64,000 bases of DNA from IMG/VR virus record IMGVR_UViG_3300042367_000228, positions 308,017-372,016 of that record. One strand, 5' to 3'. Shown in pieces: positions 12,294 to 64,000 of the stretch (the first letter of the stretch is position 1; each line of letters opens with the position of its first letter). Position numbers and translations under genes: made by a program. The notes under the pieces are model-generated. The model made no database searches. It had not been told where the DNA came from and saw nothing but the letters and a program-made list of their open reading frames with translations.

Positions 12294-13181
12294 ATGAGAG
12301 CATACGAATTTATATTAAAAGAGCTATTAGAACCAAAGAAACCTGGATCAGCTGTTAAAAGTTCAACTGTATCCGTGTCTGGAGCACAAGGGAGTATTTC
12401 TAAAATCTCCCAACAAAAATTTACCACATCTAAAGGAAATGTAGTTAAGGTTTGGTTTAAGCCAACTCAAGCTGATGACGGTAATCCATCAGTTGAAATT
12501 ACGTTTTATGTTAACGACACTGTTTACGATAATTCATCAAGTGAAGGTAAGGATATTGCAAACGATTTTGAAATTTTATCAGGAGTTGGATATCTAGTTA
12601 ATAACACGCTTGACAGAAAGAAGCTTAATCATTGTACATTTTTAGCATACTCGAGCAACCGAGATACTCGAACTAAATTTAATATTCCACTTGAAAAATA
12701 CCTAGTTAAATTAAATCACTCGTTAACAACGTTTTATGATCAAATTGCAAATTTTAATCCTACTCCTGAACAACTATCTGCAGAGTTAGAAAGAAGGAAT
12801 GCATTACTAGCAAGACTTAAAAGACCTTTAGAAACGTCTGTTAATATGGTAGACCCTAACCTAACAAACGCATTATCTCAAATGCATGCGTTTATTAATC
12901 AACCATTTGACGAAACATCTTTAGAACGCTATTCTAAGTTACTTACTGCAATTGAACATTCTTCATCTCACTACGTATATAATAACACCGGTTTTCCTAA
13001 ATTAATTAACGATCTGCATGAATTTAAATTGATAGTAAGAAGTTATTCGAAAGACGGAGCTGAAATTACATCTAATCGTAGAGCGTCAGTATATTCAAAA
13101 TTAATACAAAAGTTCTTTTCAGATAAATGGGATATCAAAACACAAGGTGCTCACTTTACCTTAACCCGCAAACTATCTTAA
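12294..13181 (+). CDS. hypothetical protein
   Basis: start reassigned to MRAYEFILKE leader. Confidence 0.7.
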   Translation: MRAYEFILKELLEPKKPGSAVKSSTVSVSGAQGSISKISQQKFTTSKGNVVKVWFKPTQADDGNPSVEITFYVNDTVYDNSSSEGKDIANDFEILSGVGYLVNNTLDRKKLNHCTFLAYSSNRDTRTKFNIPLEKYLVKLNHSLTTFYDQIANFNPTPEQLSAELERRNALLARLKRPLETSVNMVDPNLTNALSQMHAFINQPFDETSLERYSKLLTAIEHSSSHYVYNNTGFPKLINDLHEFKLIVRSYSKDGAEITSNRRASVYSKLIQKFFSDKWDIKTQGAHFTLTRKLS

Positions 13182-13375: not shown

Positions 13376-13582
13376 ATGGAAACGATTTATACTGATAGAA
13401 GAATAGTAGAAACTGGATGTATGTTGTATATGAGAATAATTTCAATTGGTACTAGCATTACTGTCTATGCTTTTAAACATGACGAGTTCCGTTGTGATAT
13501 GGAAATCTTCACCGGCGACAACTACACAGGTAACTTAGAAGAATGGTTGTTACTTCCTGTTAGTACTGCTGCATCTTACTAA
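13376..13582 (+). CDS. hypothetical protein, similar to 5359-5559
   Basis: AAGGAG RBS; FK....RCDME.F. Confidence 0.65.
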   Translation: METIYTDRRIVETGCMLYMRIISIGTSITVYAFKHDEFRCDMEIFTGDNYTGNLEEWLLLPVSTAASY

Positions 13583-13633
13583 AGGCCCCGCTGTAGCATA
13601 TACACGAATAAATAATACTTGTGGAGATATACA

Positions 13634-14524
13634 ATGAGAGCAAGAGAATTTATTGTTGAAGCGGTTAAGCTATCTATTAAAAGTATAGTACCGCCAACAG
13701 ACATTAGTCAAGAAGACAAACAACAGGCATTTGCTAACCTTAGTCAAACTGAAATTGATCAATTAGATCAGCCTAGATACATTTCAAAAGAAATGTGGCC
13801 TCAGTTCCGCAAATGGCTGGTGCAACGCAGTTTAGCAAGTAACCCTACACTTGATCCAGTTCTTACTGCATATACCCCGGGTGAAACTCTTGCTCTCTTT
13901 AAACATCCTGAGATTGCTAAATGGCATCAAGAGATTGTTCATTACAAAGTTCCTCCTGAATACAAAATGGTAGCATTTGTTCCTTGTGGCAAAACTAAAC
14001 CCTGGGCCAATGCAGCACGCGGCATTTACAAAAGCTACAATCAAATCATAAAAGACAAAAGATATCCGGTATACTTTGTAACGGTATCTGAACCACTAGG
14101 AATTGTTCCAAGTAGTCTTTGGAGTGATTTCCCTCAATACGATAATCCGGGTTTATTTAAAGATGATACTCAGCAATCCGGAGGATTGTTTACAGCTGAT
14201 TGGAAACAGTACTATGGTACAGGTAAACAGAAAATGCCATTTGATCCGGCAGCCTATTCTCAGTGTATCCAATTTTTAGGTAATATCATTAATCAGTTTA
14301 TTGAAAACAATCCGCAAGTTCAATATGTTAGTTTTGTTGAAGATAAGATGTTTAAGGCTAGTTCTAACAATGTTGGAACACATAGTGCAATGCTCTCCCA
14401 TACCAATAAAATAGATCCTGCGCATCGTTACCTGAAACGAGCCGCACCACGTGAAGAACCATATAACTATGTGGATCAATCTCTTTCAACTCATTTCGAT
14501 AAACCGGAATCCGATCAACCATAA
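13634..14524 (+). CDS. DUF5591-like (ArcS archaeosine-synthase core-like) protein
   Basis: FVPCGKTKPW and VTVSEPLGIVP...FPQYDNPG match the PC..KP / SP.G.VP..YD.P pattern. Confidence 0.6.
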   Translation: MRAREFIVEAVKLSIKSIVPPTDISQEDKQQAFANLSQTEIDQLDQPRYISKEMWPQFRKWLVQRSLASNPTLDPVLTAYTPGETLALFKHPEIAKWHQEIVHYKVPPEYKMVAFVPCGKTKPWANAARGIYKSYNQIIKDKRYPVYFVTVSEPLGIVPSSLWSDFPQYDNPGLFKDDTQQSGGLFTADWKQYYGTGKQKMPFDPAAYSQCIQFLGNIINQFIENNPQVQYVSFVEDKMFKASSNNVGTHSAMLSHTNKIDPAHRYLKRAAPREEPYNYVDQSLSTHFDKPESDQP

Positions 14525-14540
14525 TTGGTAAAAATACCAC

Positions 14541-14569
14541 TTGACATTCTGCTGTAAACATTGTATAGT
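14541..14569 (+). promoter_or_regulatory. sigma70 promoter upstream of structured non-coding region
   Basis: TTGACA-17-TATAGT. Confidence 0.65.
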
Positions 14570-14575
14570 GTACGC

Positions 14576-15050
14576 ATAACTACAGCAGGTGTCGCGCAAA
14601 CTGTATTATCTATGCGCCCTATAACTGGACAGATGTATCACAGTGATGGAATTGTTGAACTGTAGCAACGACATAACCACCTACCCATTTGGATGAACAT
14701 GAGATGTACCTTTACAAAACTCATTACAGGTTATGGCCCCGCTGTACACGTAAGGTTAAAAGAAGGAGTAGCACTCCTACGACTGATTATATGGTTAGCA
14801 TTGTATAATCAGTCCGCCGTCATATATCACCAGGACGGAGCTCGAGGTACCGGATGACCGCCTCTGTAATGCTCTAATGCTAAGACAAAAAACGAACTCG
14901 ACAAATGTCTTTTTTGCCACATGGCCTAGTTGGGCCATTGTGACTATTTGAATCTGACAAAATGAAATAAAAGAAAAATAAAATTATAATAATTGATATG
15001 AGTGCCAACGAATATAAAATTATTATAATTTAGGACTATAGTCCTTTATA
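14576..15050 (+). ncRNA. candidate large structured ncRNA or leader
   Basis: ~480 nt without a convincing ORF, at least 5 stems incl. 11-bp (14781-14814) and 14-bp (14981-15031). Confidence 0.45.
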
Positions 15051-15065
15051 CCTATAGGAGAAATT

Positions 15066-15284
15066 ATGATTGAACTAGCACCACTATCTGATTATAAGAT
15101 GTCATACGACAAAGCCTGGTTGTATTGTGCTACCTTGACCTATAAGAACAAATACGATTGGCGTATTCCGACTGATGCCGAGTTTACATATAACGAAGAA
15201 ATTGATGAAGAATCTTTTGATCAATCAGACGAACCACATCATAGCCATTGGCGTGTTCAACCAGTGAGGACTAAAGATGCTTGA
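15066..15284 (+). CDS. DUF1566/Lcl-like mini protein
   Basis: MIELAP..YDKAWLYC..KYDWRIPT..E...PVRT. Confidence 0.85.
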   Translation: MIELAPLSDYKMSYDKAWLYCATLTYKNKYDWRIPTDAEFTYNEEIDEESFDQSDEPHHSHWRVQPVRTKDA

Positions 15285-15501
15285 GTTTGCCCCAATGCCG
15301 GCCGGCCGGTTCTCATTTGATGATGCCTGGTTATATTGTGCTACACTAACATATAATAACAATTATGACTGGCGCATACCAACTGAAGATGAATTTTGCA
15401 ACTACGAAGAAATTGATTGCGATGCGTTTGATCAGAATGATGAAGGTCTTAAGATAGCTAAAGTAACACATAAAATCTGTCCAGTGCGCACTGCTGATTA
15501 A
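15277..15501 (+). CDS. DUF1566/Lcl-like mini protein
   Basis: family motif; close paralog of 15066. Confidence 0.85.
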   Translation: MLEFAPMPAGRFSFDDAWLYCATLTYNNNYDWRIPTEDEFCNYEEIDCDAFDQNDEGLKIAKVTHKICPVRTAD

Positions 15502-15560
15502 AATACCATTTGTAAAGTCCTAAGTTTTGCGCTATAATAATGTTTTATGTAAGGAGCCAT

Positions 15561-15851
15561 ATGCTAGTAGCCACTTGTCAATCAAAATTTATAACGTATG
15601 CCGAAGCTGTTATGTATTGTTTGTTTTTAGATCACCAAGGAAAGAAAGGCTGGCGGTTGCCAACTTTACTTGAATGGGCAGATACTGCAGATGGCAGACT
15701 TACAACTAATACATGGTATCGAGAGAGTACGAATGAAGAACGAGCATTGCTTGCAAAACAATACAAACATACCCAGCAAGCTATAGAAGCTATGATTGAA
15801 CCATATGAAAATCGTAAAACAGGTATAGCAGTTGCAGTGAGGGATGAATGA
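15561..15851 (+). CDS. DUF1566/Lcl-like mini protein
   Basis: EAVMYC..GKKGWRLPT; start after AGGAG. Confidence 0.8.
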   Translation: MLVATCQSKFITYAEAVMYCLFLDHQGKKGWRLPTLLEWADTADGRLTTNTWYRESTNEERALLAKQYKHTQQAIEAMIEPYENRKTGIAVAVRDE

Positions 15852-16075
15852 TAGAAATATTAGCTAACCCACCTGGGATCAGTCGGAAGTTATATAATCG
15901 CGATGCAGCCTTTTTGTATATAATTACTCTAGTCCATAATGGACATGCAGACTGGCGATTTCCTACTCCAGACGAATGGGTTAACAGTCCTTTAGCGTAT
16001 ATGGCATGGCATCAAGGAAGAATTGATGACGATAGATTTTTCAGCTATCACATATACCCAGTGAGAGATATATGA
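15848..16075 (+). CDS. DUF1566/Lcl-like mini protein
   Basis: DWRFPT.DE...PVRD. Confidence 0.8.
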   Translation: MIEILANPPGISRKLYNRDAAFLYIITLVHNGHADWRFPTPDEWVNSPLAYMAWHQGRIDDDRFFSYHIYPVRDI

Positions 16076-16266
16076 TTAGATTTGCTAAACCATCCGGATG
16101 GTTAAACAACACAACTCCGGAAGCTGCTGACATGCACGTATTGTTTTATGAAGAAGACGGTTTAAAATACTGGAGGAGAGCAACTAACGAAGATTTTATT
16201 GACTTTGCAATACACGTTCCTGAATCATTGTTATCTAATACATGTATTCCGGTAAAGGATTTATGA
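16072..16266 (+). CDS. divergent DUF1566/Lcl-like mini protein
   Basis: EDG..YWR.AT.ED...PVKD. Confidence 0.65.
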   Translation: MIRFAKPSGWLNNTTPEAADMHVLFYEEDGLKYWRRATNEDFIDFAIHVPESLLSNTCIPVKDL

Positions 16267-16484
16267 GTATGCTTGAATTAGCCCCGCCATCAGAAAAAAT
16301 GACATATGACGAAGCAATTATGTATTGCTTTTGGTTAGAACACGATGGAAAGAAAGGCTGGAGAATGCCAACACATGAAGAATGGGCAAAGACTAAAGGC
16401 ATCATGGTGTACACTTGGAGACAGAATGATCACCGTACGATGATGGATACGATGCCTGTAGTACCGGTAAGAGGACAATTATGA
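16263..16484 (+). CDS. DUF1566/Lcl-like mini protein
   Basis: YDEAIMYC..GKKGWRMPT. Confidence 0.85.
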   Translation: MSMLELAPPSEKMTYDEAIMYCFWLEHDGKKGWRMPTHEEWAKTKGIMVYTWRQNDHRTMMDTMPVVPVRGQL

Positions 16485-16894
16485 AATGGTTTAACCGAAT
16501 ATTCAATCGCAATGTATATTTAAAATTTGACGTACCTACAAACCCTCCAGACAACAACAGAGTGCGTTATGTTGTAGGAGTCCCGGTTAATCACTATGAG
16601 AAAAAAATCATTGAAATCGTTTATACTGGAATACTATGTTCCAGTGATGATGAAGCAACGATGCATTTGTTTATGATGAGTAAGCATGATGGAAAGAGAG
16701 GATGGCGACTACCTACAATACACGAAGCTATATACTGTTCAGAGCTATCAGTAGTTAAGCATTTCTCTGATTGGAATTCACTTAGAGTTCCATTAGAATT
16801 AGTTTTAGTAAGAGATGTTACAGAAGATGAGTATAACTATTACAATGGACCTATAACACGTTTCTTTAAGCAGTTTGCGCAGTGGACTTATTGA
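16481..16894 (+). CDS. DUF1566/Lcl-like protein with N- and C-terminal extensions
   Basis: DEA.M...DGKRGWRLPT..E...LVRD. Confidence 0.75.
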   Translation: MKWFNRIFNRNVYLKFDVPTNPPDNNRVRYVVGVPVNHYEKKIIEIVYTGILCSSDDEATMHLFMMSKHDGKRGWRLPTIHEAIYCSELSVVKHFSDWNSLRVPLELVLVRDVTEDEYNYYNGPITRFFKQFAQWTY

Positions 16895-37867: not shown

Positions 37868-37942
37868 GGAACTATAGTATAACAGTAGTATGCAGGTCTG
37901 CAAAACCTTGCGGTGCCGATGCAAATTTGGCTAGTTCCTCCA
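37868..37942 (+). tRNA. tRNA-Cys(GCA)
   Basis: GGAACTA/TAGTTCC, CT-GCA-AA loop, U discriminator, CCA; atypical TGCAAAT T loop. Confidence 0.85.
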
Positions 37943-52617: not shown

Positions 52618-52820
52618 CATTGCTTACTTATAGTAAGCAATGACTATAGTGATAATATAAACTCTTTACACACCATAACACACTATAGTATAATAACAAA
52701 CAGTAACAACAGTCCAAACTATAGTAGCAATACACGCTATACTATAGACTATAGTGATAAACGCTATAGTAAGAGTACAAGAGATCTCTCGTATAGCGTG
52801 ACTATAGTGAACTATAGTAA
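52618..52820. repeat. cluster of ACTATAGT palindromes with 10-bp inverted repeat
   Basis: ACTATAGT at 52643, 52682, 52718, 52748, 52801, 52811; CATTGCTTAC/GTAAGCAATG IR at 52618-52642. Confidence 0.7.
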
Positions 52821-53136
52821 TAAGACAAATAGGCCCCGCTGTACATATATAGAGATTGATGCTGTACGATGAGAGGCTTTGAATTTTCTTTTGAGATTTG
52901 GTAAACAATGAGAAGATTGATGGGAGGCCTATGGGATTTGTGGGGACAAATGGTAAACAATGTGAAAAATACGGTTTTGAGTGGGGTATTCATTGTAGCT
53001 ACCCCTGCCTCCACCCAGCCAATCAAAACTTCATTAAGTATATAGACAATGGTAAAATAGTGCCAAAATAGTGCTTTACTTTGCCAAAACAGTGTGTTAT
53101 ACTGTGCGCATACTTTAATTTAATAGGAGCGCAACA

Positions 53137-53325
53137 ATGTTCATGTTCATATTCTCCACCGCTGTTACTATAGTAGTAATTGGTATAGTAGTTTGGCTCG
53201 GTTGGTTAGTACTCAGTGTGGGATTAATCTGCGGAGGAATATTTGCCTGGGAAGACACGCAGAATATAGCGTGGTTAGGACTATCGGCATTAGGATTGTG
53301 CTTTGCAAGCGCGGGATTGCGGTAA
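53137..53325 (+). CDS. small membrane protein
   Basis: promoter and AGGAGCG RBS; hydrophobic. Confidence 0.6.
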   Translation: MFMFIFSTAVTIVVIGIVVWLGWLVLSVGLICGGIFAWEDTQNIAWLGLSALGLCFASAGLR

Positions 53326-53393
53326 ACAAACCATTTGACAGTCATACTATACTATAGTATAATATGCACTTACTATAAAACAACGGAGCAACT

Positions 53394-54266
53394 ATGTCTA
53401 CAGCAACACTACAACCGCGTATTATATCAACAGACATGCCGCGTGCTACTATAGCGCAAAGAGCAGTAGAACCTGCAGTACACGAAACAGATGACCAGAT
53501 CGTAGATAGGTTACGCACTCGCTTTACTATACTAGAAGACATGACCAAAGCAGTAAAGAAAGGTGATGTACGAGCAATGATAGTAAGTGGACCACCTGGA
53601 GTTGGTAAGTCATTTGGTGTAGAAGCAGTGTTATCAAAGAACGACATGTTCGCTGCTATAGCGCAAGATCCGAGTCTAAAGAAGTATGAAATCGCAAAAG
53701 GCAATATATCAGCATTAGGACTATATCAATTACTATGGCAATACCGCGATAAGAAGTCTATAGTAGTGTTCGATGACTGTGATAGTGTACTGTTCGACGA
53801 TATCGCGTTAAACCTGTTAAAGGCTGCGTTAGATAGCGGTCGAAACAGATGGATCAGTTGGCACACAGAATCGCGAATACTGAAAGAAGCAGGTATTCCA
53901 AACACATTCAACTTTGAGGGCGGATGTATATTCATTACTAATGTTAAGTTCGATCATGTTCGTAGTAAGAAGTTAAAGGACCATTTGGAAGCTCTTGAGT
54001 CACGTTGCCACTACTTGGATCTTACTATAGACACAGATAGGGAAAAGATGTTGCGCATCAAGCAAATCATAAGCGACGGTATGCTTGACAAGTATGAGTT
54101 CGAGAACAACGAGCAGCAAGAGATCTTAGACTATATAGACACACATAAGCACAAGATGCGCGAACTAAGTTTGCGTATGGTACTCAAAGTCGCAGATTTG
54201 CGTAAGAGTATGCCAAACACATGGGAGTCAGTAGCTTCCGTGACGTGTATGCGACCAAAACGATAA
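53394..54266 (+). CDS. AAA+ family ATPase
   Basis: Walker A GPPGVGKS, Walker B IVVFDDCD, FITN, ALESRC arginine finger. Confidence 0.88.
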   Translation: MSTATLQPRIISTDMPRATIAQRAVEPAVHETDDQIVDRLRTRFTILEDMTKAVKKGDVRAMIVSGPPGVGKSFGVEAVLSKNDMFAAIAQDPSLKKYEIAKGNISALGLYQLLWQYRDKKSIVVFDDCDSVLFDDIALNLLKAALDSGRNRWISWHTESRILKEAGIPNTFNFEGGCIFITNVKFDHVRSKKLKDHLEALESRCHYLDLTIDTDREKMLRIKQIISDGMLDKYEFENNEQQEILDYIDTHKHKMRELSLRMVLKVADLRKSMPNTWESVASVTCMRPKR

Positions 54267-54283
54267 TTATCAGTTGCATACTA

Positions 54284-54410
54284 TAGTATAGTATGATTCG
54301 CTCCCATACTATACTAACCTCTTACTATAGTGTAAACTCGCTCCTTATACTATAGTTACTTCAAAGACTCAAAATGAATTCGCTCCTCGTTTTGGGTCTT
54401 TTTCTTTATA
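54284..54410 (+). ncRNA. three-hairpin RNA with A(U/C)UCGCUCC loops; last hairpin doubles as terminator
   Basis: 12-, 12- and 15-bp stems, 9-nt conserved loops, G-U pairs on + strand, U-tract. Confidence 0.75.
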
Positions 54411-54699
54411 TTAAAAACCGGACCCTGTACTCTGGTACTAGGTCGGTCTATAAATGCAAAAAACGGCAAAAACATGGGGCTACAGACCGCTAACGACGCG
54501 GGCCAAAAACCAAAGATGAGTCTTAATTATAGGTGCCTGGATACTAAAAAGGCCCCGCTGTACATATCGGACTATGCGCATTATATATGAATATAGTATA
54601 ACACATATACGCGTGGAAGTAAAGAGTTAATTAGTTCTTTACAAACCATTACTATAGTGTTATACTATACACATATTAACAACTAACGGGGTAAGCAGT

Positions 54700-63481: not shown

Positions 63482-64000
63482 CTATTTAAAGTATGTTATG
63501 CGCTTTTTTTGTGCATACTTAATGCACAATAAATGCGCGTTAAAAGTAAAGTAAAAATAAATTGTTAAAAAGCTAACTTAAAAATGCGTTTTTTTATGCG
63601 CTTGTTTTTTTAAGTTGTGCATAGTTTACAGCATATAAAAAAAAAGTAAAATTTAATTGCAATTTATTTTTACAATTTAGCACTAAAAATGCGCATTTTT
63701 AAAAAAAGTGTATAAAAAACAATAACTTATAATTTAAAAATAATTTTATTTAATGCGCATTTTTTGCGCATAATGCGCATTTATAGCGTTTTTAATGCGC
63801 ATTTTTAGTGCTATATATTGCAAGCGCATAGCAAGCGCATAGCAAGCGCATAGCACAGGCCCCGCTGTTAGCGCATAGCAAGCGCATAGCATAGCAAGCG
63901 CATAGCATAGCAAGCGCATAGCATAGCAAGCGCATAGCATAGCAAGCGCATAGCATAGCAAGCGCATAGCATAGCAAGCGCATAGCATAGCAAGCGCATA
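63482..64000. other. GR-free non-coding island broken only by the GGCCCC motif
   Basis: no GA/GG/TC/CC in 63482-63857 and 63864-64000. Confidence 0.9.
63820..64000. repeat. GCAAGCGCATA / 16-bp tandem repeat running off the window end
   Basis: 3 x 11-bp units, then 8 copies at 16-bp period (GCAAGCGCATA-GCATA). Confidence 0.95.

Follow-up and report, generated by a model that had tools for sequence, protein, structure and literature searches.

A predicted gene for a large structured RNA in a giant T4-like lake phage extends the Polynucleobacter-1 motif

We identified a predicted, promoter-driven gene for a non-coding RNA of roughly 470 nt in a giant T4-like lake phage. The first third of this RNA is the known but unexplained Polynucleobacter-1 RNA motif (Rfam RF01718), and the rest is an equally conserved, pseudoknotted extension that the RNA family databases do not describe. 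The window analyzed here (64,000 nt) is the last 64 kb (308,017 to 372,016) of a complete 372,016-bp IMG/VR virus record with direct terminal repeats (IMGVR_UViG_3300042367_000228). The phage encodes a T4-type portal (Portal_T4, 350 bits) and is therefore a jumbo T4-like phage, and the sequencing runs that hold the DNA of the locus are lake-water and freshwater metagenomes. A preliminary description, made from the sequence alone, had noted a promoter followed by a structured region without a credible ORF and leading into a CLec gene cluster, and had inferred a large non-coding RNA or a regulatory leader that could not be assigned to a family. We confirmed the observation itself. The interpretation was supported only in part: a large non-coding RNA is strongly supported by covariation, whereas a regulatory leader is not, the family can now be assigned, and one of the five proposed stems is not conserved.

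To test the elements of this observation, we first examined the promoter and the coding potential of the region. The hexamers match the sigma-70 consensus at 11 of 12 positions, the best match of this type within 13500-16500. Both hexamers are kept in the two closest relatives (L002 and L078; L numbers denote loci extracted for comparison) and in a contig from a lake metatranscriptome, although the spacer and the upstream DNA differ, the pattern expected of a working promoter. No ORF is conserved across the region, since the longest ATG ORFs in 36 homologous RNAs have a median length of 36 aa and lie at scattered positions. The 475-nt + strand of 14576-15050 folds to -121.7 kcal/mol (z = -3.95), compared to z = -2.53 for the - strand. 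Of the five proposed stems, those now called hairpin A, hairpin B, P10, and P12 are real, P12 being the AT-rich, lengthened version in the window of a conserved hairpin. In contrast, the stem at 14817-14838 can form in the window but is not supported, because its 5' strand, GTCAT, instead covaries with ATGAC in the core junction and its 3' strand belongs to another covarying helix. The proposed GC-rich core is nearly invariant in all relatives, and the possible long-range pair TTAGCATT/AATGCTAA is a covarying pseudoknot (PK1). For the proposed CLec cluster, a run of seven overlapping or abutting small + strand ORFs (64 to 137 aa) at 15066-16894, several of them paralogous (motif AWLYCATLTY..YDWRIPT..EF), the ORFs tested gave only weak, subthreshold matches to Lcl_C (DUF1566) and FGE-sulfatase, two families that share a C-type-lectin-like fold.

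A covariance model search (cmscan) against Rfam 15, one of the checks proposed beforehand, assigned 14589-14733 to Polynucleobacter-1 RNA (59.6 bits; E = 5.8e-12; gathering score 37; model positions 1 to 141 of 141). It is the only copy in the genome, and it is divergent, since typical relatives score 100 to 122 bits. The helices of the model (P1 to P6) are 95 to 100% paired, with double changes in every helix. For instance, the outer helix of the window, CATAACC/GGTTATG, replaces the typical CAATCA/TGATTG. The family was described by Weinberg et al. in 2010 from freshwater and estuary metagenomes and from Polynucleobacter sp. QLW-P1DMWA-1 as a motif of unknown function, mostly downstream of GOS11034-family genes and with no example in sequenced purified phages (PMC2864571). 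A full-text search found no other paper that names it. The freshwater origin of the window and the copy in a Limnohabitans metagenome-assembled genome (MAG; see below) are consistent with this description, but the location is not. The gene upstream in the window is a roughly 293-aa ORF with only a weak DUF5591 match, and a promoter lies in between. This location describes most members but does not define the family.

To determine how far conservation extends beyond the Rfam model, we searched IMG/VR with a pattern from the core of the first domain (D1), which returned 92 contigs. In all 81 with at least 460 nt after the start of D1, profile searches also found two further domains (D2 and D3). 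We then aligned 36 sequences less than 94% identical to each other (alignment A1). The RNAalifold consensus on the MAFFT alignment was only partly usable, because helices were misplaced where stems differ in length. We therefore replaced it with a hand-curated structure of 75 pairs in 15 helices, three of them pseudoknots, limited to helices that the alignment keeps in register. In A1, 95.6% of cells are standard pairs, compared to 83.7% in shuffles and 35 to 41% when the partners are slid by 1 to 3 columns. Compensatory changes occur in 45 of the 75 pairs, and the covariation score is 0.379 versus 0.159; none of 500 shuffles reached any of these measures. Helices of variable length (hairpin A, P9, P11, and the P12 stem) were checked one sequence at a time: a helix forms at the same place in nearly all sequences, with unrelated sequences, although P11 is optional and absent from the window and several relatives. 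Frequent G.U pairs would be A.C mismatches on the other strand, indicating that the RNA is the + strand. Features are listed in Table 1. In typical members, a short 5' pseudoknot is also present in D1 (A1 columns 4-6 with 15-18). By eye, a segment in D1 (CCUANAC/GGAUGG) looks like an 11-nt tetraloop receptor that might dock the P12 tetraloop. In several lineages (L023, L042, L047, L058, and L093, A1 columns 321-359; and L129-type members), an optional extra hairpin of 25 to 40 nt is inserted at the same point of the core junction, between the inner and outer helices.

Table 1. Coordinates (window numbering) of the predicted RNA gene, its parts, and other features of the window
Position	Strand	Feature	Details
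14541-14569	+	Sigma-70-type promoter	-35 TTGACA (14541-46), 17-nt spacer, -10 TATAGT (14564-69); predicted start near A14576
14576-15046	+	Predicted RNA gene, about 470 nt	Both ends inferred; conservation and covariation span the whole stretch
14589-14733	+	D1, Rfam Polynucleobacter-1 motif	P1 14594-98/14613-17; P2 14624-30/14637-44; P3 14652-57/14666-71; P4 14672-78/14729-35; P5 14685-86/14691-92; P6 14699-703/14720-24
14735-14747	+	Polar motif copy (GGCCCCGCTGTAC)	Linker between D1 and D2; found there only in window-type RNAs; in the minimum-energy fold GCUGUA 14741-46 pairs with leader UACAGC 14581-86
14764-14778	+	Hairpin A (D2)	A hairpin forms here in every relative, with unrelated stem sequences
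14781-14814	+	Hairpin B (D2)	Long stem whose loop forms PK1; all 6 counted pairs show compensatory changes
14795-14802	+	PK1, 5' strand (TTAGCATT)	In loop of hairpin B; pairs with 14876-14883; 100% paired, 5 of 5 counted pairs covary
14876-14883	+	PK1, 3' strand (AATGCTAA)	
14816-14875	+	Nearly invariant core junction (D2)	Outer helix GGAGC/GCTCT 14837-41/14871-75; inner helix GAGG 14844-47/CCTC 14861-64; inner-helix loop ATGAC 14854-58 pairs back to GTCAT 14819-23 (pseudoknot); helices 10-12, 96-98% paired, compensatory changes in each
14882-14911	+	Helix P9 (D3; AAGACA/TGTCTT)	Encloses repeat 1; a helix forms at the same place in relatives, with different sequences
14895-14907	+	Repeat 1 (AACTCGACAAATG)	Predicted mostly unpaired, in the P9 hairpin loop; last two bases overlap P9
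14918-14942	+	Hairpin P10 (D3)	Core ATGGCC/GGCCAT (14921-14938); helix 13, 97% paired
14950-14963	+	Repeat 2 (AATCTGACAAAATG)	
14981-15031	+	Hairpin P12 (D3)	14-bp AT-rich stem in the window; conserved apex (about 15000-15012) with GA/GAA internal loop, two pairs, and GNNA tetraloop; covarying helix 14; stems differ in nearly every relative
15032-15045	+	Terminal hairpin P13 (AGGAC-TATA-GTCCT)	Followed by TTTAT; may mark the 3' end or act as a weak terminator; homologous hairpin covaries in relatives (helix 15); contains palindrome ACTATAGT
12279-63860	+	Polar motif, 22 sites	E.g., 13186, 13586, 14737, 17914, 32829
52643-54651		Palindrome ACTATAGT, dense cluster in non-coding DNA	Palindrome occurs 21 times; also at 15035, 34216, 37871, 57396, 60947, 61236
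37868-37939	+	tRNA gene	Rfam 46.9 bits
39840-39913	+	tRNA gene	Rfam 64.2 bits
about 63800-64000		Short tandem repeats (units like GCATAGCAAGC)	Around the last polar-motif copy, near the genome end and terminal repeat

The third domain contains two 13-nt repeats, predicted to be single-stranded, that change in lockstep. Typical members read N-ACUC-R-GAU-R-A-W in repeat 1 and N-AUCU-R-GAU-R-A-W in repeat 2, about 57 nt apart. At the variable positions, the two copies carry the same base in 36/36, 36/36, 34/36, and 33/36 sequences. Mutual information against all alignment columns showed that the strongest correlate of each position is its twin and that no complementary column exists within the RNA, whereas other correlated columns follow the two main clades. 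Three other lineages carry a different sequence that is again the same in both repeats: the window group (GACAAA(A)U), the Polynucleobacter/GOS variant (AGCGAAAG, in the flanks of the 2010 raw alignment), and the Limnohabitans MAG (AUCGAAAG). Shared ancestry inflates such counts, and lockstep change could also reflect a symmetric intramolecular tertiary contact or RNA-RNA multimerization. Nevertheless, four lineages each changed both copies to the same new sequence, which we read as suggesting two sites for one putative partner. We considered by eye whether the repeats might be anticodon loops, T loops, or rRNA mimics, but none of these readings fits all the variants.

In typical loci, the gene order is a gp55-like late sigma factor, gp47 (SbcD-like), gp46 (SbcC-like), a 141- to 148-aa SegE_GIY-YIG protein (Pfam, 115 bits; e.g., L017:1749-2189:-), and then the RNA, which starts -11 to +24 nt from the stop codon of the SegE-like gene. 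Of 76 distinct relatives, 64 follow this one small gene family, a possible counterpart of GOS11034. After the RNA come variable genes, often a baseplate-hub gene on the other strand and, further on, the T4-type portal. Two loci (L052:4127-4642:+ and L065) have an unrelated PD-(D/E)XK nuclease gene (PDDEXK_15) upstream instead, and several have other genes; loci without the SegE-like gene include the window, L008, L029, L044, and L069. The window has neither nuclease gene, its genome containing only a weak GIY-YIG match (24 bits) in a 298-aa ORF elsewhere, which argues against the SegE-like protein as an obligatory partner of the RNA. Linkage to the upstream 301-aa gene of the window was also rejected, since two contigs with an 82%-identical protein (L003 and L004) have no RNA after it. 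Thus, the RNA is not tied to either neighbor. The GIY-YIG protein has no DNA-binding extension, and nuclease genes next to a highly conserved RNA gene would fit free-standing homing endonucleases, although this is an inference. ORFs at 13646-14524 and about 12296-13181, and ORFs just downstream of the RNA in L005, L010, L011, L013, and L021, begin MRAREFIVEA, MRAYEFI, MK.HEII.E, or MRINELILE, resembling the capsid-targeting sequence of T4 internal proteins (MKTYQEFIAE). The RNA gene therefore sits next to candidate internal-protein genes in both arrangements, and the real start of the upstream ORF is probably the ATG at 13646 rather than the TTG at 13619.

A second scan of viral contigs with a 14-base pattern from the D2 core recovered at least 117 loci, of which 51 have D1, D2, and D3, 28 have D2 and D3 without D1, 8 have a single domain or D1 and D2 only, and 30 are chance hits, including one recurrent protein-coding match. 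Most of the D1-less loci form a subfamily (L129, L133, L131, L197, and L209; core at, e.g., L129:3871-3887) in which D1 is replaced by a different, GC-richer 5' domain of about 230 nt, with no Rfam match at E up to 0.1. D2 and D3 are therefore the universal core, and D1 is a clade-specific 5' domain. Altogether, the RNA was found in at least about 180 IMG/VR viral contigs. In contrast, distant-mode blastn searches with the window locus and with a typical RNA found no match in 50,697 deposited phage genome records, an absence at blastn sensitivity only. Among species-representative genomes, the D1 pattern hit only a Limnohabitans MAG (NZ_JBILQU010000031.1; L097:1-620, - strand), and 1 of 151 sampled genomes of its family has an RF01718 match. 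This chromosomal copy is flanked by housekeeping-type genes (SLT_2, deacetylase, enoyl-CoA hydratase, MscS, and TRAP transporter), and the contig ends before the 3' end of the RNA. A few freshwater Burkholderiales chromosomes carry the RNA; from the 2010 alignment, the chromosomal copy in Polynucleobacter QLW-P1DMWA-1 lies at about 2,130,700-2,131,200 of NC_009379.1.

We next asked whether the locus is represented in RNA libraries. Two lake metatranscriptome assemblies hold contigs over 14562-14869, at a k-mer depth of 27 to 123, compared to 4 to 35 on the genes at 15100-15850. However, these are assembled contigs of a close relative (L078-like) that show neither ends nor strand, and DNA carry-over cannot be excluded. 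Missing coverage of the 3' domain is uninformative, since the 3' domain of that relative differs from the window by more than the 90% likeness limit. We take these data as suggestive only.

Taken together, these data support, with high confidence, the identification of this locus as a free-standing, + strand gene for a structured RNA of the extended RF01718 family, transcribed from its own host-type promoter and consisting of three domains: D1; D2, two hairpins plus a nearly invariant junction locked by two pseudoknots; and D3, two hairpin-framed repeats, a GA/GNNA hairpin, and a terminal hairpin. Family membership, the conserved three-domain architecture, its covariation, and the lack of a conserved ORF are results of the analysis, whereas the ends of the transcript, its expression, the binding of a partner, and the function of the RNA are inferred. 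Tentatively, and with considerable doubt, we propose that the RNA acts in trans as a rigid folded scaffold that would present two identical single-stranded sites, about 55 nt apart, to two copies or a dimer of one sequence-specific partner, which could be a protein or an RNA. On this reading, it would be a ribonucleoprotein scaffold or a decoy that T4-like freshwater phages share with a few freshwater Burkholderiales. Identity and mechanism considered together, we hold this explanation to be only somewhat more likely than not.

Several alternatives remain possible, though each is unlikely. In this phage, D1 (about 165 nt) might be a separate small RNA ending at the polar motif, with D2 and D3 made or released separately. 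The polar motif, (A)GGCCCCGCTGTA(C), occurs 22 times, always on the + strand and only in the last 52 kb of the 372-kb genome; most copies lie 0 to 3 nt after a stop codon and 5 to 50 nt before the next start, and it could be a region-specific signal for transcript ends, processing, or transcription. A copy between D1 and D2 might split the transcript. Consistent with this, depth in one RNA library falls after 14733 from 79-123 to 34 and then 13, and the D1-less subfamily shows that D2 and D3 can exist with a different 5' domain. However, the second library shows no such fall, and depth from contigs cannot rank parts of a gene. Moreover, typical members join D1 and D2 by a conserved linker without the motif, D1 was never found without D2 and D3 among the 81 loci with sufficient sequence, and the predicted pairing of the motif with the 5' leader would close D1 as a domain. 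Slightly less likely is a ribozyme that, for example, cuts itself out of the upstream mRNA or catalyzes another reaction. The intricate, nearly invariant core and the close abutment to the upstream ORF, with no promoter in between in typical phages, would fit such a role, but no Rfam ribozyme family matches at E up to 1, no candidate cleavage site was identified, and the window copy has its own promoter and needs no release. An RNA-only multimer like GOLLD or ROOL (10.1101/2024.12.08.627333), in which the twin repeats or conserved loops would make contacts between molecules, is also unlikely. Although the RNA is large, ornate, and phage-borne, and repeat 2 is often palindromic (AUCUAGAU), the palindrome is lost in the window and in the bacterial variants.

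A cis-acting leader or riboswitch controlling the downstream Lcl_C-like genes is very unlikely. In the window, the RNA ends 20 nt before the RBS of the ORF at 15066, with only a weak terminator-like hairpin between them. In relatives, however, the next gene varies, is often on the opposite strand, or lies behind a match to the T4 late-promoter consensus (TATAAATA, after the RNA in 7 of 47 extracted loci). The RNA is syntenic with upstream rather than downstream genes, and bacterial chromosomal copies have yet other neighbors. Least likely is a group I intron, or the RNA part of a mobile intron whose homing endonuclease is the SegE-like gene. T4-like phages carry group I introns, and a GIY-YIG gene lies directly upstream in most loci, but no Rfam intron model matches at E up to 1, the flanking ORFs are complete, unrelated genes, so that there is no split host gene, and the window copy has neither the nuclease gene nor exons. 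A tmRNA or tRNA-like RNA was also excluded, since ARAGORN found nothing in 14000-15500 and there is no Rfam tmRNA hit. Finally, we tested whether the RNA might be a CsrA sponge of the CsrB/RsmZ type, which carries several repeated single-stranded sites for a homodimeric RNA-binding protein. The typical repeats and a D1 segment resemble the CsrA SELEX consensus RUACARGGAUGU, but the window and bacterial variants lack the essential GGA, and the CsrA Pfam domain was found in only 3 of 61 genomes of the Limnohabitans family and in neither the MAG that holds the RNA nor the phage. In addition, sponge RNAs lack a conserved pseudoknotted core. This reading was rejected as a general explanation.

Relative to the motif described in 2010, the RNA shares the freshwater habitat and, in most members, a position downstream of one small gene family, but the catalogued motif is only its 5' third. 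The 2010 text does not describe the 3' domains, although its raw alignment carries them as flanks. GOLLD and ROOL are likewise large (over 400 nt), multi-pseudoknotted, non-coding, and of unknown function, encoded by phages or prophages and by some bacteria. However, no family other than RF01718 matches the window, typical members, or the D1-less subfamily; the RNA is smaller than GOLLD, and its carriers are T4-like phages of lakes. T4 stable RNAs C and D (about 120 to 140 nt), in the tRNA/segB/ipIII-ipII region, are phage-encoded RNAs of unknown function next to a GIY-YIG Seg gene and internal-protein genes, a resemblance of context only. The omega RNAs of IscB/TnpB also are large structured RNAs that begin at the end of a nuclease ORF, but the adjacent protein here is a 142-aa stand-alone GIY-YIG domain, no variable guide segment is seen, and the RNA also occurs without that gene. 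Thus, the family is known, whereas the extended three-domain architecture with its pseudoknots, the phage carriers, the D1-less subfamily, and the concerted repeats are absent from Rfam 15 and from the only paper found, within the limits of the literature searched.

Polynucleobacter-1 has been an orphan 141-nt motif since 2010, with no function and no known phage carrier. This locus shows that the motif is the 5' domain of an RNA of about 430 to 500 nt with three pseudoknots and a nearly invariant junction, that the RNA is a regular gene of T4-like lake phages next to the gp46/gp47 recombination nuclease genes, and that its most conserved part is absent from Rfam. Large, intricately folded RNAs without a known function are rare, and past examples (RNase P, group II introns, OLE, and GOLLD/ROOL) have each revealed new biochemistry; here, twin repeats that mutate in lockstep give a concrete handle for experiments. 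On a bolder reading, which we consider slightly less likely than not, the D2-D3 core would define a previously undescribed, widespread class of large ornate RNAs, shared by T4-like freshwater phages, with two alternative 5' domains, and by a few freshwater Burkholderiales chromosomes. Its twin, concertedly evolving single-stranded sites would recruit a dimeric or duplicated partner, making it a phage-borne RNP scaffold or decoy of a new kind, and the 2010 Polynucleobacter-1 motif would be only one peripheral domain of it.
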